Positions 24,717 through 59,987 are shown, counted from the first letter of the stretch. The stretch is 64,000 bases of DNA from Octopus sinensis (GCF_006345805.1 NC_042998.1:112778001-112842000); one strand, 5' to 3'. Numbers and translations are program-made. The notes: generated from the letters alone by a model not told the origin.

Positions 24717-24812
24717 TTATTTGTCTAAATTTTCTTCACGGAATTTCATTTTCTTTGGAGAGCTTTCCCCTCTGTGAAAAGCCATGGAGCGATTTGGGCG
24801 TGTGATGAAAAG
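24717..24812 (-). CDS. Candidate terminal exon of the NOL8 C-terminal-like gene
   Basis: ctatcttctttccaatatcag| phase-0 acceptor; LFITRPNRSMAFHRGESSPKKMKFREENLDK* with AATAAA overlapping the stop. Homology is weak; chosen on splice signal and phase only. Confidence 0.4.
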   Translation of the reverse strand, partial: LFITRPNRSMAFHRGESSPKKMKFREENLDK

Positions 24813-26741
24813 CTGATATTGGAAAGAAGATAGAAAATAAAGATGAGATTCACGTTTAATTTAAAAACAAAAGGATTTTAAATTTAAAATCAAACAAGGT
24901 TTTTTACTTTACAATTCAAAATAGAAAATGCTAGAGCAAGATTTTAAATTCAAAACAGAAAAGGGATTTACATTTTAATTGAAAATAGAATTAGATTTTC
25001 CTTTTAATTTAAAATAAAACAGTATTTTACTTTTAAATTTAAAATAGAAAAGACTTTAAATGTAAATTTAAACAGAAATTTAAATTCCCCACCTGAGTAT
25101 GAACTACAAAAATGGATTATATCAATAGAGAGGGAGAAAGAAAAAGGGGCGAGAGAGCAAATATGAAATTAGACAAATATCTTAAGATCTCTAAATAAAC
25201 TTAATTAACACAAATCATCTCTTAAAAACTAAAAAAATAAGTGGTCTCTACAAAATAGAGCAAATGATTAAGAGATAATTTGCCTAAGAGATAAAAAAAA
25301 CCAAGGATTAAGAAAGAAACTTAACCAAGAGCAAGTAATTACAGATGGAAAATAGACTAACAAAATATTTCTCAGAAAAATGAGAATCAAAGATCTCAAA
25401 AGATTCATGAAGAATAAAGGGTAAAGAGAAGTCTATACTTCAAAGAGATGAAGTCATCCAAAAAGAAGATTAACTCTTTCAATAGCAATCCACCCAAAAC
25501 CAACTGTATTAACCCTCTGCTTATCCTAATATCACACATTAACCCACATGTGATACACAGGGTATATTTCTCTGGGTACCCATGCACCATATATGATACA
25601 CACTCCCAATGTTTTTCAATCACCAGACTGACTTGGAACTTACAAAAAGCAAGTTTTATATTACTCAGAACATATGATTTGGACAGGCAAATGGGCCTCA
25701 TAGAGGCAATGTAGCCGATGCCAGTGTCACATAACAGGCATGTAAAAAGCACCATTCAAGCACTGGGCCTCATGGAAGTAATGTGACCAATGCTGGTGTC
25801 ACATAACAATACCCATTACACTCTTTCAGTGGTTGGCATTAGGAAGGGCATCCAGCCATAAAAACCATGTCAAATCAGACTGGAGTCTGATGCAGCCCCT
25901 CAGCTTACCAGCCCTGGTCAAACTGTCCAACTCATGCCAACATGGACAACAGACATTAAATGATGATGATGATTACTGTCAAATATAATACTTATTTATT
26001 TGCATTGTTTTGAATTAGTTCTGCATTATCTTGTAGCTTCAAGATTTCAATGATGTGATTCTTTTTTAGAATGACATTTTGAGGTAGGTGTGAGAGGCCA
26101 GACCTGGCAGTTTGAACACAAATCAGGTGAAAATTTTGGTTGGTTTATTGAAGGGTTAATCCTTTAATTACAATAATTTTAATGAAACACACATTTTTTT
26201 TCATCTCTTACTCAGGAGGAAGGGCAGTGCTTCTAAGATTGGTAGGAGGGTGTAAAGAAAATATCCTCAAACACAGAGACCAAGCCTGAAAGCTTGCAAC
26301 AGGATGAGTTCTGCTAAAGGTAATCAAGGAGTAGGTGGGTAATGGATTAAGTGTAACACTCAAAAGGGGCAGTGGAATTTGAGCTCAGAATACAAAATAT
26401 ATGAAATAAACACAAGCCGACTCATGCTAGCAAAGAACACAGGCATTATATGATGATGATGATGATGATGATGATAATGAAGATGGATAAATGGAAATTT
26501 TAGTTATTTTATTAAATTTCCAAATTCTTGAATACTCTTTTACTTGTTTCAGTCATTTGACTGTGGCCATGCTGGAGCACTGCCTTTAGTCAAGCAAATC
26601 AAACCCAGGACTTATTCTTTGTAAGCCTAGTACTTATTCTATTGGTCTCTTTTGCCGAACCACTAAGTTATGGGGACATAAACATACCAGCATTGGTTGT
26701 CAAGCAATGTTGGGGGGGACAAACACAGACACACAACATAT

Positions 26742-26772
<31 letters not shown>

Positions 26773-26832
26773 CTATTATAATTATTATTATATTGATAGC
26801 TTACGTTTATTGAGTGTATTTAAATCTCAATT

Positions 26833-28940
26833 TTGTATGTTATGAAACTTACAGGTAAGATAGAACTACTATTTTGGAATTCATCTTTGAAGGATATTCC
26901 AATACCCCCTAGGAAAGAATTTATTTTGAAACTTATTAATAATATTAAGGATTTTGTTTCTTGGGTTAAATGGAAAGCCTACTGTTATAACTGTAATATA
27001 TCTAATTTTAACGATATTATGAATACATATGATTTTAATTCTAAATTTAAATCTAAAAATGAACCCCCATATAATAGAGATTTACAGGTCTTAGAAGATA
27101 ATATTTGGAAGGTGGTGAAAAATATTAAATTTCATAAATACCCAAACAGACATAATGAATATTTAAGAAATTTAGCTATTAGAATTAAAGAAATGAGAAA
27201 TATGGATGGTATTATTGTACAATCAGATAAAACTAGGAATCTATACAAACTGGATGTTAAATTATATGATAACCTTTTAGAGAAAGAGATAATTAAAAAA
27301 TATAAAATTGTTATAGAAAGTACACTTCATACTATAAACAAGGCCTCTAAATTAGTAATGATGAATTATAAGTTGGATAATAAAACTGAACCTTATGTAC
27401 CTATGCACCCTAGAATTACTTTGAAAGACCATAAAGTTAGATTAATTTGTCCATGTAAATCAAACCTTGGTAAATTGAGTAAATTAATTTTTGATAAATA
27501 AATTAAATAAATTAAACTACCTAAACTTATGGACTAGTAATAATAATACTCATATAAAGAATCTTGCAAACCAAATCCAAAAACAAAATTTATTTAGATG
27601 TTTATTTAATTAATATTATATTAATGAATTTTAATTACATTATAGTTTTTAAATTAATTTAGTTTATTAATTAGTGATCATAATATAGATAATGATTGAA
27701 TTACTACTGAGTTAATATTGAATGTGTCTAAAAGTTATTTTATTTAAACAATGATTTGACTCCAACGTAACCATATTTTTTTTATATATATGAAATAAAT
27801 TAATTTTTATAAGATTTTTAGAGTATATACAGTAAATGGTAGTTATATAAATTATTTTAATTTATAGAGTTTTGAGTATAATTTATTGTAGTTAATTCTA
27901 AATTTTAGTTTTATAGTGAAAGATATTATAGTGTATAGTGATTATATTCTCTATTAGTGACTTTGTTCTCTTTATCTATTAAAGCTAAAATATAGTTGTA
28001 GTTTTCATTGATAAAATATATTCATAGTTTTCATTGATAAAATATATTCGTAGTTTTCATTGTTAAAAGAATTTTTCTATCTGTTTGTTCTATTTCTGTT
28101 AATAACGTAATTCCACAAATTTTCTTTTCTGTTTTGAAATTTTAGTTAATGACACAGTTTTCGAGAGTTATGTAAACTTTTTTATTTAAGAAATTTTATT
28201 GTATTCTATATAACTATTGATTGTTAAATTTGAATCTATTATGTATATTTATTTAATTATTATTAGTATATAATTATTATAACTGTACGTAAATTTTAAG
28301 ATATCGGTTAGTCACTGTGGTATATAGATCATAAAATAGTCAAATGATTTTTTAAAGATAGGTTATACATTTTTAATTTGATTTTTAATTTTTAAATTGT
28401 ATTTCATAAATATATTCTATAGATATTTATAATATTTATGTAAGTAATAATGGACTAATTTATTTATTTTTGGTTATATGTTTATATATTTATTGATAGA
28501 GGAAATTTTAGATTTTTAATTACTATATTTGTTGATTATAATTTAGATACTTATTTTTATGTATTTATTATTTTATAATTATTAGAGGTGAACTTAAATC
28601 TAAAAATATTAATAGCGATTATTTTGTTAAATAATTTGTTAATTAAATATTGGAGTATAACTGAGTTAAAGATATTCGATAGTTTATGTTTTTTTAAAGC
28701 CAAATTATATCTTCAAAGATAAATACATATTTCTATCTATTTTTTTATCTTAAAAATTAAATATTTAACATAATAAATGGGTTGTAGGAAATAATCCTAA
28801 TGTTTTAAGTTTCTAATTTAGTTAATGGAATTTTTTTCTATAAGAAAAATTATTATTTTATTTATTTCTTAAATAAATATTGTTTAACTCTATTTGCTTA
28901 TTTATTTAACTATTTATCATTAACCTGAAGATTGACTATA
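26833..28940 (+). mobile_element. Penelope-like element (same YRDD-type family): intact 5' ORF part, heavily degenerate 3' part
   Basis: 222-aa ORF with SSLKDIPIP, WVKWKAY, QSDKTRNLYKL, ITLKDHKVRLICPCKSNLGKLSK. After 27501 only traces remain (LWTSN; F..NYY-like), in a very T-rich, C-poor sequence. The 3' extent is uncertain. Confidence 0.75.
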
Positions 28941-30480
28941 ATTTTAAATCAAATTTATTTCAATTGAATTTAAACTTAATTGTAATTCAAATTCAATTGT
29001 AGCCATGAAACGTACATTTTTTTTTTTACTTATTATATTATATATTGATCATTCATTTTTATACTTTTTGTTATTTGGTCAGATACTTAATATATTGTTT
29101 TTATTACGGTATTTTATACAACTTAACTTTTACAACAAGTTTAAATGGAGAGATCAAGCTGAATGCTTGGATTCACATTACTTTAACGGTTTATTTACAC
29201 GGTGAATTTTGATTTCTGTATCTTCCGTAAATCACTTCTTTTTTCTATACCTTAAATGTTTGTCAAATGAGTTTGCTTAGTTTCTATTTCTTTCGAAAGC
29301 TTTGTCTGAATACTTTCCAACCTTTGCCAAATATTAATCCTAATGTTTTTTACCCTTTTAGGCCATTTTTTTTTTATACATTAGGAATTACCCTTTCAGG
29401 CCTTTTTCTACATATTAAGAATTAGAATAGTTTTCAATTTAATGGTTTATAATACTATTTTTTTAGTTATTAGTATGTATGTGTATGTATATATATATAT
29501 ATATACATATATGTGTAAGTGGGTGTTTATAGGTATGTGTATATATGTATGCATGTATATGTATGTATGTATGTATGTATATAAGTGTGTATTTATGTGC
29601 TTATGTTTATCTATGTGTACATATGTGTATTTTAACCAACCAACCGTAACTAAGACAATGAAATTCAAATGTGCCAACCAATTGAATTGAGCTTGAGATT
29701 GTAAATAATCTATCAGCCCGTTAAGACCTATCACTCACCTATTGATCTGCGAACTATATGTATGTACATGCATATATAATTTTTGTATGATGTAAAAGGA
29801 TAATATCCCTTTATATATGTATATGTATTAATGGATGCTTTCGCGCATGTATGCATGTGCATGTATTTGGTACCTGTGTGTATATATATGTATGTAGATT
29901 TAGACTAAAGTTTCGATTTTCGCTGTATGATATATGAATATAATGACATTGTATATTGTTTTGCATTATTTTATTATATTGAATTAATTAATTTACTGGC
30001 ATCTCCCATATGCATCTGTCTATATATTAGGTTATACTATATTATATATTGCATATTTAATATGTAATATAATATATTATATTTTATTATGTTGTGTTAC
30101 ACTGTATTATATTATACTATATTTTATGTGGTATCTTCCATCTACTATGTATTGTGAATAGCAGAATGCACATATTCCTTTATTGGAATTATTAATAATA
30201 ATAATGATATTAATAGTTTTTAGTAATGTAATACAATGAACTTTGGACTTTGTATATGTACACTTTGATGTGGATATATATATATATATGTATATTCCAG
30301 TATATAGATCTGATTAACTGTAACCTTATGTGTATGTATATTATTATTATGTATATACTTATATATATGTATATGTAGGTGTATATACACTTATGTGTAT
30401 ATGTATATATGCATATTGTATATGTGTACCTTCTTTAATATTCATATTTGCATTTTATATCTTTATAATTGTACTTTATA

Positions 30481-30606
30481 ATCTCTGACGAGGCCTGGAG
30501 ATATATATATAAGTAACTCATTTTTAACTGCATATTACCTCAATACATCTGACTAATATGGGCATAATGAGATACTCTTATCTACAGGCTGAAACAGCTG
30601 TAAGAT
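30481..30606 (+). ncRNA. PLE-type hammerhead ribozyme motif with long stem II insertion
   Basis: ATCT-CTGACGA-GGCCTGGAGATA...TATCTACAGGCT-GAAA-CAGCTG-TA-AGAT; palindromic ACAGCTGT stem III; 11 of 12 stem II pairs. Confidence 0.72.
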
Positions 30607-30719
30607 CCATTTTATATGTATTATTCTTATGGTATTATCTTACTTATTGATGTATATTGTTTTATTCTGTATTATTCTGTTGGATTTGGATGTTCCTATT
30701 TAATCTAAATAATTAGTTA

Positions 30720-30783
30720 ATAAATTATATGAATTGGTATTATCTGTAAGTCGATGACTGAAAGAATCTATTCCTCCATTTTC

Positions 30784-30862
<79 letters not shown>

Positions 30863-31028
30863 GTATGTGTGTATGTATATGTATATATATATATATATAT
30901 ATATACATATACATACACACATACATACATATATATATATATATATAATATATATATATATATAAATAAGAAAATGGAGGAATAGATTTCTTTCAGTCAT
31001 CGACTTACAGATAATACCAATTCATATA

Positions 31029-31032
<4 letters not shown>
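30720..31032. repeat. Foldback: approximately 68-bp inverted repeat around a TA/TG microsatellite
   Basis: taaattatatgaattggtattatctgtaagtcgatgactgaaagaatctattcctccattttcttatt versus its reverse complement at about 30966-31032. Confidence 0.9.
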
Positions 31033-31085
<53 letters not shown>

Positions 31086-31242
31086 TACAACGCACTTCTT
31101 TCAGTTTCCATCTACCAAATCCACTCACAAGGCTTTGGTCAGCCCAACGCTATAGTAGAAGACACTTGCGCAAGGTTCCACGCAGTGGGACTGAACTGAA
31201 CCCGGTACCATGTGGTTCGTAAGCAAGCTACTTACTACACAC

Positions 31243-31504
31243 CCACTTCTACACCTTGAAACACTCACAGAGGCAATGACAAGAGATTGAGACCTTTGGC
31301 GATTTGCTGTGCTTGAGAAGACACATCAAGCCAAGTGAAATCATCATCATAGCCAGTGCTGGTGACATGTAAAAGACATTTGTGCCAGTGACACTTAAAA
31401 GGCACCCACAAGATTCTTGGAGTGATTGGCATTAGGAATGGCATCCTGTTGTAGAAGTGAAGCTAAATCAGATTGGAGCCTGGTACAGCTCTCCAGATTA
31501 CCAG
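31243..31504 (+). repeat. Approximately 260-bp local direct repeat, copy 1 (RTE 3'UTR-derived)
   Basis: Near-identical to 32587-32848, including idiosyncratic variants (acaagattcttggagtgattggcattaggaatggcatcctgttgtagaag). Confidence 0.9.
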
Positions 31505-32168: not shown

Positions 32169-32254
32169 ATTTCTGACATCTCTCTGAAATCCTGATGACC
32201 ATTTCGTCCATAATTCATCTCCAGAAAGCTTGCGGTGAAAATATTTAACTCCAT
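32169..32254 (-). CDS. NOL8 C-terminal-like gene, exon
   Basis: tttctttgttgtcttatag| and AAT|GTAAGC; 86 nt, phase 1 to 0; DGVKYFHRKLSGDELWTKWSSGFQRDVRN, similar in position and pattern to the recalled penultimate NOL8 segment (G..F.R......W). Confidence 0.78.
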
Positions 32255-32586
32255 CTATAAGACAACAAAGAAATACAAATTATGGTATTGGTGTTGTTTA
32301 GCCCCAGGTGAACCCTGACTGAGCAAGACTATTATCAAATGCATTCATACCATGACCATCAAGTGGGCATCTTTTTTTTAAGCTATATTCTCAAGATTAC
32401 ATCACTCTAATTACACATACCTCCTCTTCTTAAGACAGCAAGATATAATTTCTAGGTTGAAAAATCACAAAAGACCAACAAGAAAGCCTTCACACAGTCA
32501 CATGATCTACTAGAAATAGCCATCAAATTCCCCTAAAATTCACACTGTACCATCTTAAAAAAATGACAAGACTTATGACTAGCATG

Positions 32587-33440: not shown

Positions 33441-33454
33441 TAAATATATATATA

Positions 33455-35215
33455 TATCATCATCATCATCATCATCGTTTAACGTCCGTTCTCCATGCTA
33501 GCATGGGTTGGACGGTTCGACCGGGGATCTGGGAAGCCAGAAGGCTGCACCAGGCTCCAGTCTAATCTGGCAATGTTTCTACAGCTGGATGCCCTTCCTA
33601 ACGCCAACCACTCCGTGAATGTAGTGGGTGCTTTTTACGTGCCACCTGCACAGGTGCCAGGTGAGGCTGGCAACGGCCACGGTCGGATTGGTGTATTTTA
33701 TGTGCCACCGGCACGGAAGCCAGTCGAGGCGGCGCTGGTATCGGCCACGAGTCGGATAGTGCTTTTTACGTACCACCAGACCAGGGATCCTGGCTGGTTC
33801 AATTCGATTTCGATTTCGCTTGCCCCAACATGTCTTCACAAGCAAAGGGGGTTGGCATGAGTGCCTGTCGTACGGTCGGATTGGAGTATTTTACGTGCCA
33901 CCGGCACGGAAGCCAGTCGAAGCGGCGCTGGCATCGGCCACGAGTCGGATAGTGCTTTTTACGTACCACCAGACCAGGGATCCTGGCTGTTCAATTCAAT
34001 TTCGATTTCGCTTGCCCCAACATGTCTTCACAAGCAAAGGGGGTTGGCATGGGTGCCTGTCATACGGTCGGATTGGAGTATTTTACGTGCCACCGGCACG
34101 GAAGCCAGTCGAGGTGGCGCTGGCATCGGCACGAGTCGGATAGTGCTTTTTACGTACCACCAGACCAGGGATTCTGGCTGGTTCAATTCGATTTCGATTT
34201 CGCTTGCCCCAACATGTCTTCACAAGCAAAGGGGGTTGGCATGGGTGTCTGTCGTACGGTCGGATTGGAGTATTTTACGTGCCACCGGCACGGAAGCCAG
34301 TCGAAGCGGCGCTGGCATCGGCACGAGTCGGATAGTGCTTTTTACGTACCACCAGACCAGGGATCCTGGCTGGTTCAATTCAATTTCGATTTTGATTTCG
34401 CTTGCCCCAACATGTCTTCACAAGCAAAGGGGGTTGGCATGGGTGCCTGTCGTACGGTCGGATTGGAGTATTTTACGTGCCACTGGCACGGAAGCCGGTC
34501 GAAGCGGCGCTGGCATCGGCCACAAGTCGGATAGTGCTTTTTACGTACCACCAGACCAGGGATCCTGGCTGGTTCAATTCGATTTCGATTTCGCTTGCCC
34601 CAACATGTCTTCACAAGCAAAGGGGGTTGGCATGGGTGTCTGTCGTACGGTTGGATTGGAGTATTTTACGTGCCACCGGCACGGAAGCCAGTCGAAGCGG
34701 CGCTGGCATCGGCCACGAGTCGGATAGTGCTTTTTACGTACCACCAGACCAGGGATCCTGGCTGGTTCAATTCGGTTTCGATTTCGATTTCGCTTGCCCC
34801 AACATGTCTTCGCAAGCAGAGGGAGTTGGCATGGGTGCCTGTCTCGGATGAGGTTCTATATCGACTTCGCTTGCCTCAACAGGTCTTTGTGTCCAAGGGA
34901 GGAAAGGCATTCATAAGTGGGCTGGGCTCACTTGTCCTGCCTGGTCTTCTCACGTACAGAATATTTCCAAGGTCTCGGTCGCTGGTCATTTCCTCAGTGA
35001 GGCCTAAAGTTCGAAGATCGTGCTTCACCACCTCGTCCCAGGTTTTCCTGGGTCTACCTCTTCCACGGGTTCCCTCAACTGCTAGGGATTGGCACTTTCT
35101 CACACACCTATCTTCATCCATTCTCGCCACATGACCATACCAGCGCAATCATCTCTCTTGCACACCACAACTGATGCTTCTTAGGTACAACATTTCTCTC
35201 AAGGTGCTAACGCTC
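33455..35215 (-). mobile_element. RTE LINE 3' end with internally amplified 3'UTR and (GAT)n tail
   Basis: MRWYGHVARMDEDRCVRKC...GRGRPRKTWDEVVKHDL (34876-35148), then UTR motifs and AAACGATGATGATG tail at 33458-33480. Confidence 0.85.
33680..34845. repeat. Tandem array, six copies of an approximately 190-198 bp unit
   Basis: Unit starts (acggtcggattgg..tattttacgtgcc) near 33680, 33871, 34064, 34255, 34453 and 34645. Confidence 0.92.
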
Positions 35216-37600: not shown

Positions 37601-37614
37601 ACATATACATATAT

Positions 37615-40164: not shown

Positions 40165-40262
40165 CAGACAATCTAGGATCATCATTGATAAAGAAAAACT
40201 TTCTGTCTGGTGGTGGCATAGACGTCTTCATCATCAGTGTTCTGTGATCTGTGACAGCAGCT
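40165..40262 (-). CDS. NOL8 C-terminal-like gene, exon
   Basis: tttatttccaacccttgcag| and CTG|GTAAGT; 98 nt, phase 2 to 1; AAVTDHRTLMMKTSMPPPDRKFFFINDDPRLS (cf. recalled NOL8 RFFFFSKNDERLQ). Confidence 0.8.
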
Positions 40263-41822: not shown

Positions 41823-41925
41823 TTGTTTTTGAGTTGTTGATCTCTGACTTTTGTTTCATCACATTCTTCACTACTACCTCCTTCATCGGAAGATTCATAT
41901 TGTTCCCTAGTTTCGATTGGTTCAT
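41823..41925 (-). CDS. NOL8 C-terminal-like gene, exon
   Basis: ctctctgttctgtttcaattag| and AA|GTATGT; 103 nt, phase 1 to 2; DEPIETREQYESSDEEVVVEECDETKVRDQQLKN, acidic SSDEE patch. Confidence 0.75.
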
Positions 41926-43631: not shown

Positions 43632-43777
43632 CTTCATTTTCCTGATCTTCAGAAACTTTTGTTTTACCAAATAAAGACAACAGTGAGAAAGAAGCACTAT
43701 CTGTTGATCTAAATGATGTAGCAATCGATTTTTCAACATGAAAATATTTCTCTTTGTTAGTTTCAGATTCTTTAGCA
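43632..43777 (-). CDS. NOL8 C-terminal-like gene, exon
   Basis: ttttttttcttag| and AAG|GTAGGT; 146 nt, phase 2 to 1; SAKESETNKEKYFHVEKSIATSFRSTDSASFSLLSLFGKTKVSEDQENE (cf. recalled VSKEMYYNIAMDLKEIF). Confidence 0.8.
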
Positions 43778-47620: not shown

Positions 47621-47728
47621 CTGAATGATGTTTCAGACTTTGCTGCTTCCTTTTTCTTTCTTTTACGTTTTTGTGAACTTTGGGCAATATTCTGTTGATT
47701 AAGCTCTACTCTAGGGCTGGCCAAATTT
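47621..47728 (-). CDS. NOL8 C-terminal-like gene, exon
   Basis: ttttcattattttgtag| and CAG|GTAAGT; 108 nt, phase 2 to 2; NLASPRVELNQQNIAQSSQKRKRKKKEAAKSETSF (basic NLS-like run; cf. recalled NOL8 KAKRKKKREEAEK). Confidence 0.8.
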
Positions 47729-50412: not shown

Positions 50413-50483
50413 TTGGATGTTTTCTGCTTTGACTTAGCCAAATTTTTTTCATCATCTGATGACAAAATATTCATTATCGTCAT
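50413..50483 (-). CDS. NOL8 C-terminal-like gene, first coding exon (exon spans 50515-50413; ATG at 50483)
   Basis: tttttttattcag| acceptor at 50517-50516 and AA|GTAAAT donor; MTIMNILSSDDEKNLAKSKQKTS; its phase-2 end joins the next exon in frame. In-frame TAA at 50498-50496 upstream of the ATG. Confidence 0.6.
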
Positions 50484-50599
50484 ACTACTCCTTTCTTATT
50501 TTGTTTCAACAATTCCTGAATAAAAAAAATAGATTTCACTGAATAGAAATATAATCAAATAAACATTTATTTACAGTTCTATATTTAAGAGATGAGAAA

Positions 50600-50838
50600 T
50601 TATGTACATTATTTTCATTATTTACATTTGACGGATATTTATCATCTTGTTTGTTGTTAACACGTTTCAGCTGATATACCCTCCAGCTTTCATCAGGTGC
50701 CTTGGGGAAATTTCGAACCTGGGTACTCATCCCTAAGGTATTTTTCGATGTTATTATTATTATTATTATTCAGGTCACTGCCTGGAATCAAAATCGGAAT
50801 CTTTGGGTTAGTAGCCTGCGCTCTTAACCACTACGCCA
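50600..50838 (-). mobile_element. tRNA-headed SINE-like element with hammerhead-like segment (left, inverted copy)
   Basis: Reverse strand: TGGCGTAGTGGTTAAGAGCGC (A box)...TTGATTCC (B-box-like)...CCTGATGAAAGCTG..CAGCTGAAACG. Confidence 0.75.
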
Positions 50839-50846
50839 GGGGTATA

Positions 50847-51078
50847 TGACGTAGTGGTTAAGAGCGCGGGCTACTAACCCAAAGATTCCAGTTTGATTCC
50901 AGGCAGTGACCTGAATAAGAAAAATAATAACATCGAAAAGTACCTTAGGAATTACCCAGGTTTGAAATTTCCCCAAGACGCCTGATGAAGGCTGGAGGGT
51001 GTATCAGCTGAAACGTGTTAACAAACAAGATGAGGACGAATATCCGTCAAATGTAAATAATGTAAATAATGCAAACAT
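50847..51078 (+). mobile_element. tRNA-headed SINE-like element with hammerhead-like segment (right copy)
   Basis: TGACGTAGTGGTTAAGAGCGCGGGCTACTAACCC...GTTTGATTCC...CTGATGAAGGCTG(N10)CAGCTGAAAC; head-to-head with the left copy, 8-nt spacer. Confidence 0.75.
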
Positions 51079-52400
51079 TTATTTGGGTTTTTTTTTAAAT
51101 TCATATATTTTTAAAACATTCACTAAAACATTTATCGAAGTTGATCTTTTCATGAACCATACAGAGTTAAACTTAAGTTGGAATTACTGTGAACCACACA
51201 GGTTCAAATTTAAATTGAACCAATCATGAACCTCACAGATTCATATAATTACCACTTGACTCTGATTTCTGAAAATTTAGAAAGAAAATAATCAAACACC
51301 CCTTAAGCATAACTGAACCAATGATCCATATAATCATTTCTTCTCTACATAAAGACTATATTTTGAACATTTTATAACCCCTGGCTCAAAGTTTAATTTT
51401 TACCTCTAATTATATTGTTCTAGTTTTTGACAGCATCCAAAAAAAATACCACACAACTAAAAAGCATTAAGTCACTCGCTGGAGTACCCTAGCCTCAAGA
51501 CCACAGACGCATTGTCTCTTCTCTTGGCATTTTCTACCGCTATTGTTATGGCCTTTGCTCCTCAGTGCTGGCTGGGTTCTTGGTCCACTCGTCTTCCTCT
51601 TCTCATCACTGTTATGTCCGACACCCAATGCTCCATACTAATTACTATTTCACAATTCTTGTCTTTCACGCAGTTGTTGACTAGCAACAGTTCGAGAACA
51701 TTAATAACATCACTCTCACCTGTCTAGGAAACCACGAGCACTGTCCATTCCTCTAGACTTAAAAAAATAAAACAAGTATTAATAAGTACTATATCAGGCA
51801 ATATAATTCCTGATGTACAAAAAGACAAGATGGACAGAGTAGATCTAGGACTAAATAACAATCTGTTGTTTTTGTGTCGTCGCTCGATTTGCTAGAAATG
51901 ACAACCATATTTTCCACGGATCATACATTCTTAAATTATAATTCAAAATTATTTCGATATACAAACTTATAAGAAACTATCTAGAATGCAGTACCTCTCA
52001 GACATAGTCTCCAATAAGTTTTCAACTTCCATAAAGAAAACATCTATGCCTTGACAGAAATTCAACATGTGTTTATTGATTTAAAATCTAGTTCTCAGTA
52101 ATAAGAGCATTTCAACACACTATTCTTTTAATATATAATATTTCTTGATCGCATAAAACTGATTATATTAAATATCATTGTTAATTGAATATAAGTGATC
52201 AATAGTATTACTATTTGATGAAATGGAAAAATATGAAGTCAAAAGATTACGGAAAAAATGTTTTCGGATGTTCGAGATAACATTTTCAAACAGTATTCAC
52301 CAATTGTAATTAAATGATATTAAATATATATATAGACTTACGGAGATGTACTCGCATAGCAAGTGATTTGATCTGAGATCGTGTGCTGGAACGAAAACAA

Positions 52401-52680
52401 TTGCAGCGTGGAAGGTGTTTGTAAGCCATTTAAGAAACACACAAAAGCCGTTCGATTCACTTCAACATTTAAGTTTAATTTGTCAAAATATTTTTGTCGC
52501 TATAAGACCGCGACCCGTTCACTGACAAAAATCCAAGATGCAGCACGGATTTTTGTCAGTGAACAGGTCGCGGTCTTATAGCGACAAAAATATTTTGACA
52601 AATTAAACTTAAATGTTGAAGTGAATCGAACGGCTTTTGTGTGTTTCTTAAATGGCTTACAAACACCTTCCACGCTGCAA
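52401..52680. repeat. Near-perfect palindrome, 134-bp arms, 12-bp spacer
   Basis: 52401-52534 is the reverse complement of 52547-52680 with one visible mismatch; spacer aagatgcagcac. Confidence 0.95.
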
Positions 52681-52730
52681 ATATATAGACGTTTACTTTT
52701 TATCATTAATAAACCCAAACAAAAACTTAC

Positions 52731-53180
52731 GTCAATTATTTTCAGGAATGAAAACTTTCAGACACGTTTCGATTTGTAATTAGTAGAAACACATGGTGCT
52801 ACGCTATTATATTGGTCCACAACACAAGCGACACTTTCTCACTCTCTTCACACTTTTCAGGTGTACGTTAGTTAGATTCTTAACTCCGTCCAGTCAGTGA
52901 ACTTACGAATTCTTCTCACTAATTGTTGCCGACGGAGACCACCAGTAATTTCCTCAGACTTCTGTTTTATCCTAAAGTAACTTATTTAAGTAAAATTTTA
53001 ATCCACCAGGGACAACTATTTCCTGGCACCGCTTAAACAAGGGAGATAATGAAACACGTGGTCTGAGTTTTATATCTATGTTGACATGAAAATATCGCAA
53101 TAGTTCTAAATATCTTTATATATATATATAAATTCAATGTTCTTTAGTGTAACCTTGCTGAATGTCCGATTTTCGTAGAT
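52731..53180. promoter_or_regulatory. Putative bidirectional promoter / 5'UTR exon region
   Basis: Lies between the NOL8 ATG (53181, +) and two strong minus-strand donors (|GTAAGT at 52730 and 52906) that could splice to the acceptor at 50516. No TSS data. Confidence 0.5.
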
Positions 53181-53310
53181 ATGGAAGAGCCGAAGCGACT
53201 ATTTATTGGTGGACTTTTTGATAATGTGACGGAATGTGAAATTAAAGATAGGTTCAAACATTTTGGTAAAGTATCCGAAGTAGAGATTCGAAAGAAAAAG
53301 GATGAATCAG
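53181..53310 (+). CDS. NOL8: Nucleolar protein 8, coding exon 1 (RRM start)
   Basis: MEEPKRLFIGGLFDNVTECEIKDRFKHFGKVSEVEIRKKKDES has an RNP2-like LFIGGL and matches the recalled NOL8 N-terminus (KRLYVGGL...F.RFG.VS.VEI...KD). Ends CAG|GTATGT, 130 nt, phase 1. Confidence 0.9.
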
Positions 53311-53774
53311 GTATGTTATGGCTAAAGCAACATAAATTACCGTTTTCCGATTCAGCAACTTTTTGTATAATCACTATATTTGCATGTTTATATTTTGTAT
53401 TCAGGTGATTTTTCGTTTTAGAAGTGACTAGTGGATATGAGGTAAATTTTCCTGGTAACATTCTCCATGTAATCTAATAACTATTTCTATTGACCTAACA
53501 GCTAAGTAAACTGATAGAATAAAGTATTTTAGTCAGAAACACATGGAAGCTGTGGCAGTGTATTTCATCTTATAACCTATGGGCATAGTTTCGGTTGTAG
53601 TGACATGCGAAACTTCGCCAACCTATGAATAACCAATCTAGATATTCAACTTAAGTGCCTTGACACTCAACCAAAAAGGCGTGTGAAAACTTCAACGTTT
53701 GCATAGATTTTCAACTAAATTATCAATAATAAACACAAGTAATTAAGTGTAGTGAAATCTAGAATTTATCTATA

Positions 53775-54630
53775 TGAGGTCTGATCAATGAGTGTCCGAA
53801 CTGTTGCTATAGTAACGAAGCTAAAGCATGCAGAGTAGAGTCGCTTGGCAAAGATTGACCATGTGCTGTGCATGCGCATTAAGTTTTAACGTTCTAGCTC
53901 GCTTCTGCTGCTCACAACAGTGCTTGGAAGGAACGTGTGTAGCGTGTGACCGTCGCATTGACCATGACAGAGAAAGTTGTCATGGCGATACCTGCTCAGA
54001 GGCTCATTCTAAGTTGAAGAAAGTGTATGAAGTGGGGCGTATGAGCCGCACACGAGTGTACGAATAGTTCAGACATTTCCAAGATGGCCAAAACATGACG
54101 ATATTGACAAACGTTCTGGGAGACGTGCAACCAGCAGAACTGAGAAAAACATCACAGCTTTGAGGGTAAATCATTGAATCACCATCAGTGAGTTATCAGA
54201 GAATGTGCAGATTAGTTGTGATTCAGTTCAGTCCATTATCATTGAAGATTTGGGTATGAAATGCATGTCTGTCAAGCTTGTGCCAAAACTGCTTTCAGCT
54301 GACCAAAAGGAGACTCTTGTCTCAGTTGCACAAGATCTCCGAGAACGAAAACTTTGCGTAGGGTTTCTAGGCAGGTATCGCCAAGCTTTTGGCAGAATTT
54401 GATGCAGATTCTCTGCTCAATTCTCTCTGTCGTGGTCAATGCGACAATCACACGTTACACACCTCCCTTCCAAGCACTGCTGTTTACACACTGCAGAGGT
54501 GAGCTAGGATGTTAAAACTTAGTGCACATGCACAGCAGAGTTTAAGGTCATTCTGTACCAAGTAGCTTTACATTGTGTGCTTTAGCTTCATTACTGTGGC
54601 AACAGTCTGGATACCTATTGATTGACCACA
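53775..54630 (+). mobile_element. Internally deleted mariner-like element in NOL8 intron 1
   Basis: Long imperfect TIRs (tg(a/t)ggtc..atcaat..gt.tcc..actgttgc..agtaa.gaagctaaagca), TA flanks; HTH remnant KLKKVYEVG.MSRTRVYE.FRHFQDG. Confidence 0.8.
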
Positions 54631-56498
54631 TATATAAAATCAACAGTAAAAAGCAGGAAGTAACAAAAGGGAAACAGCAGAATAAATAATCAAAATAGAG
54701 GTATGCGATTCCATCTAATTTATACATCTTATGAGGAGTAACTGCTATTTTTCTCTAAAACATTAATGGCATTACAGTGGATGGTTGTAAGGCTGAGGTG
54801 CATAGAATAGCCAGGCAATCTCCTAGGTATCATCTGATATGTCAGTGATGCAGGTCACCAATGAAATGAAAAACTCTCTTGTCACTAGCCCAATACCCAC
54901 CAAGGTCTCAAAAACCATAAGCTGGAAAACCCTCATCTCCATTACTACATAAAGCATATGTGATGGAATTGAAAGGCAAAGTGTGAATCCATCAGGCTTC
55001 CTTTTGATTATTTTCTTTTTTTCCATCTTTTACATTATGTAAATTATGATTTAACCATTTAGTATTCAGCTTACTCTGTCAGGTATAATATTTATTTAAT
55101 CACATTTTATAAAATTAATCCTGTATTATTTTCAGCTTAGATATTTCAAAGATATGATCGTTTATTTTCAGAATGACATTGCAGGGTCAGTGTGAGAGGC
55201 CTGATCTGGTTAGTTTTATCTTAAAACAAGTAGAATATTTGAACTGTATATAGCCATTTTAAATGATGAAGAGTTAAAGCCATTCTTCTACCTGCCTCTA
55301 ATTATCCCATCTTTTTATCCAGACTTAAAATATTTAGGATAACATTCAATATTCCGTCTTTTTCTAAGACATAAGTGTAATAATGAAATAACAACAGAGA
55401 ATTATCCATATCAGATTGAAAGCTAGTTTATGTTGTTGATCTTTTACATCTAATTCGGTATCAAATTACTTGAATCAGAAATGACTTAGCAGAAAGGAGT
55501 TCCATCTGGATTAGAGTTGACAATAAGCAGAATGTTGAAACAAATGTCAGTGTGGAACAGCTGGACTTCCTACAGGAGTTTGACATTAATCACAGAAGCA
55601 AATTCACATGATCAGCAGATTGTGTGTTTTGCAAAAATAAGAATATGAATAGTTAGGATTGAAATCGAAATCAAATTCGATGACTGACATCTGTGCTAGT
55701 GGAGCGCTAAGAGCATGATCGTTGCCAGAGCAGCAAACTGGCTTCCGTGTCGGTGGCACGTAAAAAACACCATTCAAGCGTGATCATTACCAGTGTTGCT
55801 TTACTGGCACGTGAAAAGAACATTCAAGCGAGGTTGTTGCCAGTGCCGCTGGACTGGCTCCTGTGCAGGTGGCACATAAAAAACACCATTTGAGCGTGGG
55901 CATTGCCAGTACTGCTTGACTGGCCCTCGTGCCAGTGACACGTAAAAGCACCCACTACACTCTTGGAGTGGTTGGCGTTAGGAAGGGCATCCAGCTGTAG
56001 AAAGTCTGCCAAATCAGATTGGAGCCTGGTGGTGCAGCCATTTGGTTCACCAGTCCTTAGTCAAATCGTCCAACCCATGCTAGCATGGAAAGCGGATGTT
56101 AAACGATGATGATGAATTAAAACAAAAGTTTATGTTTGAGTTGGACAAACTCACTGCTATGTCCTTCTACTGATGGAGGCTCTACCTAGTCACATGGTCT
56201 GCTTGAAATAGTAGCAAAATCACATCTTACTATCTTAAATAAAGAAGGATACATTGAACAGTATGGTTTTAGATATATAAAAAGTGATTGTCATGACTGG
56301 AATACCTTTGATCAAAGATCAGGTCAGTCAATGCTGATCTGGAGCTGAACAACTTCAGTTTGTCACCTTCTCTCTTATTTAAACTCCCATTATTAGTTAA
56401 TCAGCCAACCTGCCTGAGCCTAAATTAAAATACTTTGTAACAATCTTTATTGTACGTTACTATCGGTTGTAATATTTTCTTCATATTTCTCTTCATAG

Positions 56499-56561
56499 GT
56501 AAACCAATAAAGACTTTTGCCTATATCAATATAAACACTACAGATGAAAAACTGAAATCTT
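56499..56561 (+). CDS. NOL8: NOL8 coding exon 2
   Basis: ttctcttcatag| acceptor and |GTAAGT donor; 63 nt, phase 1 to 1; (G)KPIKTFAYININTTDEKLKS, with RNP1-like FAYINI as in NOL8. Confidence 0.9.
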
Positions 56562-58870
56562 GTAAGTAATGTATATTATTTTTACTCACCAAGTAAAATA
56601 TAATACCAGTCAAATACTGGAATCAATCTAATCAACTCTAGCCTTCCCCCTATCTATTTCTACACTGATTTCTTGGTGATGGTGGCAGCAGTATTATTAT
56701 TATTATTATTATTATCAATAGAAAAGGCAGCAAGCTAACAGAATCGTTAGCATGCTGGGTAAAATGCTTTACGGCATTTCATCCATCTTTACATTCTGTG
56801 TTCAAATTCTGCCAAGGACAACTTTGCCTTTCATACTTTTGAGGTTGATAAAATAAGTACCAGTTGAGCACTGGGATTGATGTAATCGACTTGCCCACTT
56901 CCCTGAAATAGCTGGCCTTATGCCAAAAATTTCAAAACCAATATTATTATCAGGAGGTGGCAAGCTGGCAGAATCGTTAGCACGTCAGGCAAAATGCTTA
57001 GCAGTATTTCGCCCATCGCTTCGAGGTCAACTTTCACTTTCATCCTTTCGGAATCAGTTAAATAAGTACCAGTTACATACAGGGCTCAATGTAATTAACT
57101 TAATCCCCCCCCACAAGCTGCCTTTATGGGAAAAATTTGAACTCATTATTATTATTATTATTATTAGAAGGAAGAGGCTGATAGATTGACAATTTTTAGA
57201 GCATTTGACTAAATAACTAGTGGTGTAGATCAACTTTACCTGCCATGCTTCCCAGTTTGATAAAACAAATATCAGTAAGGCACTGAGGTCAATATTAAAT
57301 CAACTATAAACTCTGCTCCCAAATATTTATAGCTCTGTGACTGTATTTAAAATCATTGTCATTTCTAAAATTAAGTGACATAGTGCATGGCAGGGGGTTA
57401 AGTTGTTGAACTTCTGACCATATCACCATGTGTTTAAACTTTGCTACTGTTATGTCCCTTTGAGCGAGATATATGTACACCTCTTTACTCCAGTTTATCT
57501 GATATAGAGCAGGTTCCATTTACCTCATAGATGAATGATCTAAAAACAATTGCTCCACCAAGTAAACCATGTCACCAGGCGAATACAGACAAATGTATGT
57601 AAAACTGTTAGAGAAATGAAATAGATTCTAAGATAGAAAAGTTGGATACTTTCTTTTCCTTGTAATAAGTCCTTAGCCTTCATCCTGGTTATTACACATT
57701 TAGCCTAGTTTCCTGGGTCACAGTGGAGGTAGTAAAATGTTGTGCATTAGTAGATGTGCCAGTAGAAGAGTTGTTTGGCAAAAAGTGCCCATCATTTTTT
57801 GCCAGAGTTCCCAAATTAATGTAGGAAAAATAGGAAGACTCCTGGATTGATCTTAAACAAGAATTATGGCCAAGAATATTCACAACAGAGCAAACACTAC
57901 CCAGAGGTCATGTAGTGGTGTTGAACCAGGTGACAAATTATGTCTACAACAATCAAGAGACAGTAGAGTTTTGAAGGTCGACTACCAGAAATAAACAAAT
58001 CTTGTAAATAACCAACTGGTGATTCACTGCATCATTTGAAGAATGATGACCATCACCAATTGGTATTCATTCTAAAATATCTAAGATTGGGGTAATTGAG
58101 ACAATAATCTTTACCTTATAAGGCTGAATGTAACTGTTCAGGTTAACAACAGTCTTCTTTGTTTTAGTGAATGAGGACCAAGACACATAGTGCTTTGTTG
58201 TACTCAAGAAGACCTGCCCACTACAACAGAATCGAGATCCTAAAACCAAGGTGCTACATAAAAAGTATTGGTGTGGGTACTGGTGCTGGCACCACATAAA
58301 ATGCACCCAGTGTAATCTAAATGCTTATGTTGCTGCTTAACTCCAGGTCAGACCTGATCTAGCATTAAGAAGGGCATCCAGCCATAGAAACCTAGCCAAA
58401 ATAGACTACGGAACTTGATGCTGCCCCTAGCATTGCCAGTTCTTCTCAAGCCAGCCAACCCATGCTAGCATGGAAAATGGACTTTAACTGTTGATGATGA
58501 ATGTGAAAATATGGTAATGGGGTCGGGATTAATGTTAGAGAAATCTTGACCAACTACAGCAGTGCCACATTGACTTTGTTGTAAGAAGATAAATGTATTC
58601 TGTCCGATAAATTCTTTGATGCTAATCTAAATGCTTATGCTGCTGCTTAACTCCAGGTCAGACCTGATCTAGACCTTTGATCAAAGATCTTACAGTAGTG
58701 AGCATCCTATCTTTTATTGAGACATAGTTTACCTATGACTGTATTTTGCAGTATGTACTTTGTTTATAAGACATAAGTGTATGATGTCAAGGTGGTTTAG
58801 CTGCTCTATCTGGAAAGTCAGGCAGCTATGTGGAGGAGCTCATTAGCTCATAATCTGTTTTATTTTATAG

Positions 58871-58949
58871 GTATGAAGGCATTGAATTGTACAAAGTGGC
58901 GGTCTCATGAAATGAAAATTGAAATAGCTAAGCCAAGTTCTTACCATAA
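58871..58949 (+). CDS. NOL8: NOL8 coding exon 3
   Basis: tattttatag| and |GTAAGT; 79 nt, phase 1 to 2; (C)MKALNCTKWRSHEMKIEIAKPSSYH, similar to recalled CMSVLNKTKWKGGTLQIQLAKESFLH. Confidence 0.88.
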
Positions 58950-59836
58950 GTAAGTATCTTTCTAATCTCAGTTTAATATTCATCATTCCTTAATGTCTGT
59001 TTTTCACATTGGCATGGTTTGGACGGTTTGACCAGAGCTGACAAGCCAGAGAACTGCACCAGGTTCCAGTCTGATTTGACTTGATTTCTATACCTGGATG
59101 CCCTTCCTAACGTCAACCACTTTACAGTGTGTGCTGGGTGTTTTTAACATGGCACCAGCACAGGATTCTTGTAAGCCAATCTTCTTCACCAGAGGATATG
59201 GCCTTAACACTTCTGTTGTGGAGTGCAGGTCTTCTTGCAAAGGCAGTGAGCTGGCAGAATTGTTATCATTCATGACAAAATGCTTAGTTGCATTTCTTCC
59301 AACATTGCATTCTGAGTTCAGGTGCTGCCATGGTCAGCTTTGCCTTTCATCCTTATAAAATAAGTATCTGTTGTACCAGAGGGATCAATGTAATCAACTT
59401 ATCCCCTTTCCCAAAATTAAAAACATGTCTAAGCATAAATCTGTCCATGTCTGAAGGACTAAGGAGAAATATTACCTTGCTTGGAAAAACGGTGAGGTTT
59501 GATGACTGAAAGAGTGTCTGACCATGGAAGAATGGAAATGCAGACATTAAAACGATGATGAGGTTGAATTTTATTCTGGGTTTGAGATTAAGTAAGATAT
59601 TGGACTACTGACTATGTGGTCATGTGTTCAAACCTTACTATTGCAATCACCCCAGATCCAACTCTTTTGACCCCATTGATAGATTTGATTGAGAAAAATC
59701 AAAAAAATCAACTCACTTAAGTTTTCTATGCTCATGCTAGAGTTATGAGTCGATAATTGTTCTTTTTATATATTTATTTATATATATATATAATAAATTA
59801 TAAGACAACTAATAGCATATTTCTGTTTTATTACAG

Positions 59837-59987
59837 CTTGTTAAAAGCTATTGCTGAACAGAAAAGACAGCTGACAGAAAAGGAACCAGAGGAAATGGAG
59901 GTATCATCAAATGCAGGTTCTGATGTAAAATGGTCCAATAAAACCTTCCGTAATGCCAGATTAAGAAGGGAAGTTCCTGACAAGAAG
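59837..59987 (+). CDS. NOL8: NOL8 coding exon 4
   Basis: ttttattacag| and AAG|GTATTT; 151 nt, phase 2 to 0; LLKAIAEQKRQLTEKEPEEMEVSSNAGSDVKWSNKTFRNARLRREVPDKK; frame continues from exon 3. Later exons not seen before 64000. Confidence 0.8.

Follow-up and report, generated by a model that had tools for sequence, protein, structure and literature searches.

Probable fission of NOL8 into two divergent genes in octopuses and a cuttlefish

The window analysed here is a stretch of 64,000 nucleotides on chromosome scaffold C2 of Octopus sinensis (GCF_006345805.1 NC_042998.1:112778001-112842000; positions are counted from its first letter). Two genes of opposite orientation lie here, and both have a start and a stop of their own: LOC115232651 on the minus strand, referred to below as the C-half, and a plus-strand gene, the N-half. 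Six minus-strand exons had been proposed in a preliminary description of this DNA, and their coordinates, splice sites and frame all check, every exon having an AG acceptor and a GT donor and the chain reading as a single open frame from the ATG at 50483. A seventh, terminal exon (24812-24717), with the acceptor cag/ctt at 24812 and the stop codon TAA at 24719-24717, completes an ORF of 235 aa that is identical at every letter to the O. sinensis RefSeq entries XP_029658514.1/XP_029658515.1, annotated as "uncharacterized protein LOC115232651". The exons of the C-half are as follows.

50413-50515, minus strand: first coding exon, with 5' UTR at 50515-50484 (32 nt), ATG at 50483 and CDS to 50413
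47621-47728, minus strand: exon 2, with the basic stretch KRKRKKKEAAK, a putative NLS
43632-43777, minus strand: exon 3, with the motifs KEKYFHVEKS... and SFSLLSLFG
41823-41925, minus strand: exon 4, an acidic/serine linker with the weakest constraint of all parts
40165-40262, minus strand: exon 5, carrying PDRKFFFINDDPRLS
32169-32254, minus strand: exon 6, carrying DGVKYFHRKLSGDELWTKWSSGFQRDVRN, within the helical stretch that the AF2 model predicts best
24717-24812, minus strand: terminal exon, LFITRPNR...ENLDK, aligning with LFHTRQKH... of Sepia and of the protein P0007

Most of the motifs quoted earlier for this frame are present (KRKRKKKEAAK, KEKYFHV, FSLLSLFG, FFFINDDPRL and GVKYFHR...W); the one given as YESSDEE really reads YESSDEGGSSEE. 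The 5' UTR of the exon at 50515 contains an in-frame TAA, and an in-frame stop upstream of the ATG is kept in 4 octopods. Because this exon is preceded by a pyrimidine tract and a CAG acceptor that are conserved in the four octopods, a non-coding first exon is expected upstream of 50515. The C-half protein is predicted to be mostly disordered, with a short helical part (AF2 model), and neither an RRM nor any other Pfam match was found in it.

NOL8 (yeast Nop8) is a ribosome-biogenesis factor. The resemblance of the C-half to the NOL8 C-terminus, at first proposed from the order of its motifs, was borne out by profile search, hhalign and colinear alignment. The C-half profile matched named NOL8 C-termini with a probability of 96.7 % (hhalign, E 3.4e-10). 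An exhaustive C-half profile search gave 5 hits only, the best outside octopods being P0007 at its residues 226-425 (E 3e-11), and P0007 as query led to the named NOL8 of Saccoglossus, Xyrauchen and Eleutherodactylus and to a Solemya protein (E 2e-17 to 5e-11). Further matches of the octopod C-half profile fall at 648-804 in the C-terminal region of the Solemya protein and at 329-511 in the NOL8-like protein of Saccoglossus. In a multiple alignment that is colinear across the entire C-half, NOL8 C-termini and the octopod protein share, in the same order, an L.IL start, a basic stretch, KE.YF.V, FS[LF], an acidic SSDEE stretch, FFF..DD.RL..G..F.R...W and a basic tail; in the C-half the motifs read KEKYF.VE, SFSLLSLF and FFF..DDPRL..GV.YF...ELW.KW. 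Judged by these alignments, LOC115232651 encodes the C-terminal module of NOL8, detached from the rest.

The plus-strand gene spans 53181 to 65171 and encodes the N-terminal module of NOL8, made up of an RRM, a DWV..LP...PSKFC.N.KKF block and a lineage-specific S/K-rich tail. Its RRM ATG at 53181 lies 2,697 bp from the ATG at 50483, in agreement with the distance of about 2.7 kb to NOL8 RRM exons on the opposite strand reported in the preliminary description.

53181-53310, plus strand: exon 1, ATG and first part of the RRM
56499-56561, plus strand: optional exon, GKPIKTFAYININTTDEKLKSC, middle of the RRM; absent from (skipped in) O. sinensis isoform X2
58871-58949, plus strand: exon encoding the end of the RRM
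59837-59987, plus strand: exon encoding the linker after the RRM
61240-61299, plus strand: exon carrying DWVKYKQALPIMRIRQNRWK, followed by a U12-type intron
64296-65171, plus strand, just beyond the window: last exon, IITVNPSKFC..., 280-aa S/K-rich tail and stop

Pfam RRM_1 scored 33.9 bits on the N-half of O. bimaculoides and 24.7 bits on O. sinensis isoform X2 (cut-off 20.7 bits), and residues 5-188 of the O. bimaculoides N-half aligned with residues 2-188 of NOL8 from the fish Xyrauchen at 40 % identity (BLASTP, E 3e-41). The post-RRM block, DWV.K.G..LP......KI....PSK[FY]C.N.KK, is present in the N-half and matched in the Solemya protein too; the RRM and this block are shared with NOL8/NOP132 and invertebrate NOL8-like proteins (Xyrauchen P0013, Eleutherodactylus P0015, Saccoglossus P0012, Solemya P0014). 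The plus-strand gene contains no C-terminal NOL8 motifs and ends at its own stop at 65171, and no C-terminal or middle exons of NOL8 were found within 100 kb downstream, a search for such 3' exons beyond 64000 having been proposed as a check in the preliminary description. NOL8 is a single polypeptide in vertebrates, in a hemichordate and a bivalve, and in further invertebrates, the proteins compared here measuring about 600-1200 aa, whereas the octopod parts are two genes on opposite strands. Among these unsplit outgroups, a single protein holds both RRM and C-terminal block in vertebrates (P0013, P0015) and in an invertebrate transcriptome (P0018), and Solemya P0014 unites PSKFCHN with the middle and C-terminal blocks.

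Between the two start codons lies a region that was aligned with O. vulgaris and O. bimaculoides and that has the following features.

50516-53180, no strand: inter-start-codon region of 2.7 kb, presumed to hold a bidirectional promoter common to both genes, with TE insertions
52331-52680, no strand: foldback, MITE-like insertion with 134-nt arms that are 99 % complementary
53055-53060, no strand: CACGTG E-box, the sole copy in this region, 121 bp before the N-half ATG

Exactly one CACGTG E-box lies between the genes in each species compared, and CpG o/e exceeds 1 over 52.2-53.4 kb. The MITE-like foldback has many genomic copies at 94-97 % identity and the orthologous site in O. bimaculoides is without the insertion; from these comparisons we regard it as lying outside the ancestral structure of the gene pair. 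One promoter is presumed to drive both halves. Head-to-head gene pairs with a bidirectional promoter are a known general class, to which the pair is similar in its divergent orientation, short spacer (325 nt in Sepia), CpG o/e above 1 in Octopus and conserved E-box; it differs from the usual pairs of unrelated genes in that the partners are halves of one ancestral gene, and from short-spacer pairs in that TE insertions have stretched the spacer of Octopus to 2.7 kb.

When the entire 2.72 Gb genome of O. sinensis was searched in six frames, each half was found once. The head-to-head layout recurs in the assemblies of O. vulgaris, O. bimaculoides and Argonauta hians; neither ORF is interrupted in any of the 4 octopods, and O. 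vulgaris and Argonauta hians preserve all seven exons of the C-half with their phases. Evidence of expression comes from Sepia alone, in RNA-seq contigs from 10 runs, assigned to Sepia esculenta through papers citing the run accessions. These contigs carry a spliced 197-aa N-half and, divergently, a spliced middle-plus-C-half of ~474 aa, and they bridge both genes across a spacer of 325 nt between start codons that is identical across contigs. The 197-aa ORF is found on 126 contigs and is followed by its stop and a 3' UTR of ~0.9 kb, and the Sepia C-half is provided with a separate ATG and 5' leader. Orientation is divergent in every species compared, at start-codon distances of 325 nt in Sepia, 1.75 kb in Argonauta and 2.7-3.3 kb in Octopus. 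Since octopods and Sepia have the same layout, the split is probably older than the divergence of octopuses and cuttlefishes.

The two lineages differ in what the halves contain. The Sepia C-half, like P0007, retains the NOL8 middle region, and the Sepia N-half stops about 25 aa past PSKYCHN; the octopod N-half bears the 280-aa tail and the octopod C-half begins at the L.IL motif. The octopod pair is without the middle block of NOL8 proteins (KRLES..RQ, RF.IKPQFEG..G.KLM.LQ..FG.D.RF), which was not found with Solemya or Sepia queries in six-frame searches of the O. sinensis window plus 150 kb flanks or of the whole genome, these being weak negatives. Most likely, octopods have lost the middle region and translation of their C-half begins inside a once-internal exon.

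Two readings of the locus had been set side by side at the outset, and the single-copy halves, together with a plus-strand gene that has its own stop, favour a split of NOL8 into two divergent genes. Under the other, an inverted partial duplication, the plus gene would be a complete NOL8 and the minus gene an extra, RRM-less paralog with a captured promoter; head-to-head geometry alone would suit this reading, but it fails because each half is single-copy in the genome, a second copy of either part being absent, and the end of the plus gene at 65171, with C-terminal NOL8 motifs lacking both in it and in the 100 kb downstream, likewise makes it very improbable. A mis-join within a contig that inverted part of one colinear NOL8 had been named as a further possibility, and there are features that might invite it, in that the scaffold is chromosome-scale, an inverted repeat lies between the halves and a 100-N gap lies 6.7 kb left of the window. 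The window and the 100 kb to its right are free of N, however, the hairpin is the dispersed MITE-like element that is missing in O. bimaculoides, and the same layout in three further independent assemblies and in the Sepia contigs from 10 runs excludes mis-assembly so far that we grant it next to no probability. Rejoining of the halves in RNA by trans-splicing into a full-length NOL8 mRNA, for which the strong conserved acceptor opening the first coding exon of the C-half could be cited, is scarcely more credible, given the stop and 3' UTR of the Sepia N-half, the ATG and leader of its C-half, the closure of the octopod frame within the exon upstream of the ATG and the finding that no N-to-C chimeric contig was seen among the Sepia contigs. 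Because the octopod and Sepia pairs divide the ancestral protein differently (a short N-half with the middle kept in the C-half in Sepia, a 280-aa tail and a C-half starting from L.IL in octopods), it is thinkable that octopods and decapodiforms split NOL8 separately by two inversions and converged on the layout. We consider this unlikely, although less so than the foregoing alternatives: the same unusual event, an inversion of promoter and 5' exons, would be needed twice, one E-box is retained in both lineages, the apparent resemblance of the octopus N-tail to the beginning of the Sepia C-half falls short of significance, and the octopod state is explained by a secondary loss of 5' coding exons, to which the conserved acceptor before the ATG exon and the in-frame stops upstream point.

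It could also be proposed that the minus gene is a decaying, transcribed remnant without protein function. The intact C-half frame is more than chance: in neutral-substitution simulations at the Octopus-Argonauta divergence (32 % nucleotide), 0.1 % of sequences remained stop-free and 99.9 % gained stops. Between Octopus and Argonauta the C-half appears to be under moderate constraint (dN/dS 0.57, bootstrap 95 % interval 0.42-0.82), with ratios of 0.34-0.47 across its NOL8 motifs. Among Octopus species, with few substitutions, the ratio is about 0.9-1.0, and the selection proposed in the preliminary description is supported only moderately, by the comparison with Argonauta and not by that within Octopus. 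This within-genus ratio, the predicted disorder and the loss of the middle region would all suit a remnant; because the ratio of N-half exons 1-4 within Octopus is similarly high (0.64), however, the former mainly reflects low power. Between Octopus and Argonauta the ORF has survived with all seven exons and their phases, dN/dS is lower over the NOL8 motifs than overall, and the C-terminal part is the essential one in yeast Nop8; we therefore regard decay as improbable.

We therefore think it likely that coleoid NOL8 underwent gene fission into two single-copy divergent genes, and we infer an inversion origin, co-regulation and separate nucleolar roles. A single inversion would have turned the 5' part of the ancestral NOL8 round together with its promoter. 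The promoter would then have stood with its back to the 3' exons left behind, and its antisense firing would transcribe these from a new start codon. Under such a common promoter the two products may be co-regulated and may work in the nucleolus as separate proteins, with the N-half binding pre-rRNA and the mostly disordered C-half docking partners via short helical motifs. From homology and from the literature on yeast and human, both halves may be supposed to be nucleolar and to take part in pre-rRNA processing or 60S biogenesis. In yeast, Nop8p has been divided into engineered halves, N-Nop8p and C-Nop8p; the N-terminal half, which contains the RRM, was found in association with 5.8S rRNA, and the C-terminal half was by itself able to bind Nip7p and to restore growth (Santos et al. 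2011, PMC3126838). A C-terminal protein that lacks the RRM can thus work alone. The likeness to the cephalopod pair drawn here is one of modular function, and the yeast halves are laboratory constructs whereas the cephalopod split is natural and fixed.

Animal gene fission is known to proceed via duplication and complementary degeneration, as in Drosophila monkey-king. There, too, one ancestral gene became two, each keeping part of the coding sequence, but the NOL8 pair has no trace of a duplication stage; because its parts are single-copy and adjacent, a direct break by inversion fits. This would be a clean gene fission without duplication, in which one inversion would account for both the break and the new promoter of the orphaned half. 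No prior description of a NOL8 split was found.

The octopus-cuttlefish divergence is estimated at more than 200 million years ago. On a bolder reading, which we put forward tentatively and hold to be slightly short of evenly balanced, an essential ribosome-biogenesis factor has existed as two co-regulated polypeptides since before that divergence, its 3' exons rescued by antisense firing of the inverted promoter and its middle region dropped in octopods, and the two proteins re-associate on the pre-ribosome or became independent factors. If true, the pair would parallel in nature the dissection of yeast Nop8p into N-Nop8p and C-Nop8p. The finding is an evolutionary curiosity of modest mechanistic reach, a new example of gene fission and not a new type of system. 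It gives an identity to LOC115232651, which RefSeq lists as "uncharacterized", and to the orthologues of this gene in O. vulgaris, O. bimaculoides and Argonauta, and it means that cephalopod genes annotated "NOL8" hold the N-terminal module alone, which orthology and gene-content tables would otherwise score as truncation or loss. Octopuses and cuttlefish may provide a natural test of the separability of RNA-binding and partner-binding modules in NOL8/Nop8.

The minus-strand gene of the pair (LOC115232651, the NOL8 C-terminus-like gene, here C-half) was recovered as a complete coding model. All six minus-strand exons of the preliminary description were confirmed in place, each between an AG acceptor and a GT donor, and all in a single frame; joined, they gave 204 open codons starting from the ATG at 50483. 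An exact spliced-model search with the seventh exon added matched the C-half, in every letter, to RefSeq XP_029658514.1/XP_029658515.1, 'uncharacterized protein LOC115232651'. The motifs that had been read in this protein were likewise present, apart from 'YESSDEE', for which the actual letters are YESSDEGGSSEE. Features that complete or vary the C-half model are as follows:

24812 (acceptor) to 24719-24717 (stop TAA), minus strand: C-half seventh exon, which brings the protein to 235 aa
14424-14545 in compared locus L032 and 23200-23321 in the O. bimaculoides locus L033: C-half exon 5

The exon from 50515 starts with a 32-nt leader containing an in-frame TAA and is preceded by a pyrimidine tract and CAG that are conserved in O. 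vulgaris, O. bimaculoides and Argonauta hians. Therefore, the ATG exon is not the first exon of the transcript, and we infer an upstream non-coding exon 5' of 50515. Exon phases were identical across all seven exons in Argonauta, where the gene occupies only 10 kb. Exon 5 (40165-40262) measured 98 nt in O. sinensis and O. vulgaris and 122 nt in O. bimaculoides and Argonauta, an in-frame 24-nt difference on the acceptor side that suggests use of a shifted or alternative acceptor. In O. bimaculoides, the annotated C-half (221 aa; L033 24955-25073) runs through the exon-6 donor to a stop (…DVRNVSLFSYYFGV, then stop) without the last exon; since this locus contains 3,174 N, the missing end is probably an annotation or assembly gap and not a true difference. 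Within the 7.9-kb intron between exons 5 and 6, a 192-bp unit repeated six times in tandem (33679-34843; 94 % matches) coincided with the GC maximum of the window (0.47).

A Pfam search of the C-half matched no family; the NOL8 C-terminal block has no Pfam model, and homology was therefore shown through profile searches. Separately annotated orthologues were found by a word-indexed search in O. vulgaris (235 aa, 97 % identical), O. bimaculoides (221 aa) and Argonauta hians (240 aa, 51 %), and a profile built from these three was searched exhaustively against 1.84 billion representative proteins. Five matches were obtained in all, the top non-octopod one being P0007 (E 3e-11, residues 226-425 of 434), which as a query itself retrieved Saccoglossus 'nucleolar protein 8-like', Xyrauchen texanus NOL8, Eleutherodactylus coqui NOL8 and an 840-aa Solemya velum protein (E 2.4e-17 to 5.4e-11). 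The octopod profile also directly matched the C-terminal regions of the Solemya (648-804/840) and Saccoglossus (329-511/543) proteins, and the octopod alignment, compared profile to profile with the last ~230 residues of the four NOL8/Solemya proteins, scored a probability of 96.7 % (E 3.4e-10). The resulting nine-sequence alignment was colinear from the octopod start MTIMNIL, aligned with a conserved L.IL motif, through the basic tail LFITRPNR, aligned with LFHTRQKH. Thus, given these profile matches and the colinear alignment, the resemblance to the NOL8 C-terminus proposed in the preliminary description is now tested homology. PDB sequence searches found no NOL8 structure. AlphaFold2, run on the nine-row alignment, predicted disorder over most of the C-half, and the mean pLDDT of 53.8 was too low for a fold search. 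The helices that it predicted, at residues 76-83, 172-181 and 187-217 (pLDDT 70-81 for the second and third), correspond to the conserved motifs.

The plus-strand, RRM-bearing gene (N-half) starts at ATG 53181, 2,697 bp from the C-half ATG, and its last exon and stop fall just beyond the window:

53181-53310, 58871-58949, 59837-59987, 61240-61299 and 64296-65171, plus strand: N-half exons of the 431-aa RefSeq isoform, exact model
56499-56561, plus strand: N-half 63-nt exon in mid-RRM, encoding GKPIKTFAYININTTDEKLKSC

Pfam RRM_1 exceeded its cut-off in the N-half, and the first ~188 residues were colinear with fish NOL8 2-188 (40 % identity, E 3e-41), an alignment that covers the post-RRM block DWV..G..LP...KI....PSK[FY]C.N.KK. 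Beyond this block the protein continues for ~280 S/K-rich residues (17 % S, 17 % K) to its stop, a tail for which no significant match to other NOL8 proteins was found. The 63-nt exon contributes to the proteins of both O. vulgaris and O. bimaculoides and is skipped in O. sinensis isoform X2 (P0001), where the Pfam match is limited to residues 7-39; skipping would leave the RRM broken. The last intron (61300-64000, on to 64295) starts ATATCCTTT, carries TTCTTAAC ~10 nt from its 3' end and terminates in AT, as is characteristic of a U12-type (minor-spliceosome) AT-A intron. The RefSeq N-half protein could be reproduced only via this non-canonical junction, and the O. vulgaris model reads through it (…RWKISFQLTIFFLR…), so that the PSKFC block is absent.

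The headline of the preliminary description, two NOL8 halves head-to-head around one region, was borne out by four octopod assemblies and by Sepia contigs. Besides O. sinensis, the layout was present in O. vulgaris (GCA_951406725.2), O. bimaculoides (GCA_001194135.2) and Argonauta hians (GCA_054771915.1), each with an RRM_1 gene on one strand, the C-half on the opposite strand and the start codons 1.75-3.3 kb apart. Mis-assembly, one of the explanations raised at the outset, was excluded by this recurrence: the identical layout occurs in three more assemblies and in ten Sepia runs, and the window itself contains no N, the closest assembly gap (100 N) lying 6.7 kb leftward and the 100 kb to the right being gap-free. 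An inverted partial duplication had been the other proposal. In a six-frame search of the whole 2.72-Gb O. sinensis genome, however, the C-half exons and the N-half exons were each found at the window locus only, with next-best matches at E > 0.01 to unrelated RRMs; because a second copy is absent genome-wide, the duplication origin was rejected. A tblastx synteny comparison of the Argonauta gene downstream of the C-half (RCC1-like) with the left part of the window gave noise only. One structure between the genes was considered as a possible scar:

52331-52680, no strand assigned: MITE-like foldback, ~345 bp, with 134-nt arms 99 % complementary and a 280-nt hairpin at 52401-52680

The hairpin was rejected as a trace of inversion or assembly. 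It is a high-copy MITE-like element: among 2,195 first-look candidates genome-wide, no fewer than 40 copies were scored, at 94-97 % identity. O. sinensis and O. vulgaris share it at this site, but it is absent from the orthologous O. bimaculoides site; therefore, it is a recent insertion and no rearrangement scar.

The region between the genes aligned at 90-98 % across the three Octopus species, while with Argonauta only coding exons aligned. The CpG observed/expected ratio was 1.1-1.7 at 52.2-53.4 kb versus 0-0.8 in most adjacent 200-bp bins. Every species compared, namely O. sinensis (53055-53060), O. vulgaris, O. bimaculoides, Argonauta and Sepia, had exactly one CACGTG between the start codons, and the 5' leader of P0007 had one too; these copies (the window and loci L032, L033, L034, L036 and L035) were invariably followed by TT, in the context CACGTGTT, and the entire 64-kb window held 13 copies of the hexamer. 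The E-box is a motif typical of growth-regulated promoters, and the CACGTG at 53055 may be a conserved E-box of a shared promoter. Just upstream of the C-half ATG exon, nested inverted repeats at 50598-51080 (128-nt arms at 87 %, enclosing arms of 48 and 39 nt) that carry A/T-rich tails look like two SINE-like elements inserted head-to-head. At 20998-23191 on the minus strand, 1.5 kb past the C-half 3' end, retroelement-remnant ORFs, one with a GIY-YIG domain (Pfam 24.2 bits) and neighbours of 141 and 284 aa without a Pfam hit, suggest a Penelope-like element. Farther left, long TA/CA-type simple-sequence satellite blocks (13400-15200 and 17400-19130) encode the same peptides from opposite strands (13764, plus; 19124, minus) and make up one large inverted repeat of at least 1.2 kb.

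Sepia data were taken from Logan contigs, which papers citing the run accessions identify as Sepia esculenta larval transcriptomes. The contigs of P0011, a close relative of P0007, were ~3.2-3.4 kb long and carried two divergent, intron-free ORFs. The first (197 aa; found on 126 contigs) contains the RRM and PSKYCHN, shows 47 % identity with the octopus N-half (E 2e-52) and closes with a stop followed by ~0.9 kb of 3' UTR; the second (~474 aa from MKAIERPAK), a match to the octopus C-half (E 2e-14), has both the C-terminal block and the middle block of NOL8 (KRLESLKEWQKQ; FEGKSGKKLKELQRKYGNDDRFKL; FKDVTALRLDP). An identical 325-nt start-codon spacer and the same divergent structure were found in ten Sepia runs. 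The contigs are RNA, because both ORFs are spliced, and those spanning the spacer suggest overlapping divergent transcripts. P0007, from a sample other than the Sepia runs, had its own ATG (MKNIEKPAK) preceded by a 242-nt leader. Two 3' variants of the Sepia C-half were seen when contigs L036 and L037 were compared, …KTIKLLFHTRQKHIVRRLNYKKSAVFKK (P0025, 10 contigs) versus …KTIKLLGLIHTPTNLNLPGSTIY (P0011), the P0011-type end probably reflecting intron retention or the use of a different last exon. With divergent pairs in octopods and in Sepia, the split is thus present in both coleoid superorders. Among outgroups the parts reside in one protein in the vertebrates Xyrauchen (P0013) and Eleutherodactylus (P0015), in an invertebrate transcript protein (P0018; RRM and C-terminal block) and in the bivalve Solemya (P0014; PSKFCHN, middle block and C-terminal block).

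Of the Sepia C-half, only the final ~200 residues have an equivalent in the octopod C-half. The middle block, sought with Solemya and Sepia queries, was not found in the window plus 150-kb flanks, the other octopod loci or the whole O. sinensis genome, all of these being weak negatives. The octopod ATG exon may once have been internal and have taken over as the first coding exon when the coding exons 5' of it were lost, a reading that the conserved acceptor and the closed frame upstream of the ATG fit.

The observed arrangement can be derived from an ancestral gene ordered promoter, N exons, middle exons, C exons. Inversion of the segment comprising the promoter and N exons would yield an outward-facing N gene, then the promoter, then the remaining exons reversed; the stranded exons would require merely a start codon and antisense initiation at the same promoter, and the inverted N part would require a new 3' end, a requirement that fits the lack of homology between the Sepia and octopod N-half tails. 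The tail-to-tail layout expected had the 3' part been inverted was not seen. Two separate inversions, one in octopods and one in decapodiforms, seem unlikely to us. A tblastn likeness of the octopus N-half tail to the N-terminal residues of the Sepia C-half, if true, would imply breakpoint duplication or independent breaks, but shuffle tests gave p = 0.03, 0.70, 0.99 and 0.98 for four species pairs, and the likeness was therefore rejected as an effect of K/S-rich composition. A single inversion in the coleoid ancestor is, we infer, the most economical reading.

Between Octopus and Argonauta, the C-half showed dN 0.37, dS 0.65 and dN/dS 0.57 (bootstrap 95 % interval 0.42-0.82; 0 of 500 replicates reached 1), with ratios of 0.34-0.47 in the motif-bearing parts and ~1 in the acidic linker. 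When the observed 220 substitutions were scattered neutrally, the C-half frame stayed stop-free in only 0.1 % of simulations. The selection suggested earlier for this gene thus holds against Argonauta but does not show within Octopus, where the few changes gave 0.87-1.0; the RRM-bearing exons of the N-half gave 0.64 over the same distance, and the within-genus C-half ratios are therefore low in power. Constraint on the C-half is real but moderate.

In yeast, Nop8p residues 221-484, without the RRM, bind Nip7p and rescue growth of a Nop8p-depleted strain (PMC3126838). The two modules of Nop8p are separable by experiment, whereas the cephalopod split is natural, and this separability makes a viable natural split plausible. 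By analogy, the yeast result points to the C-half as the essential module that docks partners, and its KRKRKKK basic stretch could act as a nuclear/nucleolar targeting signal. Both gene models are already in RefSeq, with the C-half called 'uncharacterized' or 'hypothetical' in all four octopods, and full-text literature searches found no description of LOC115232651, of cephalopod NOL8 or of fission by inversion with a bidirectional promoter. The coleoid NOL8 pair is a new, well-supported instance of gene fission, of moderate interest overall, in which the head-to-head geometry is the instructive feature.
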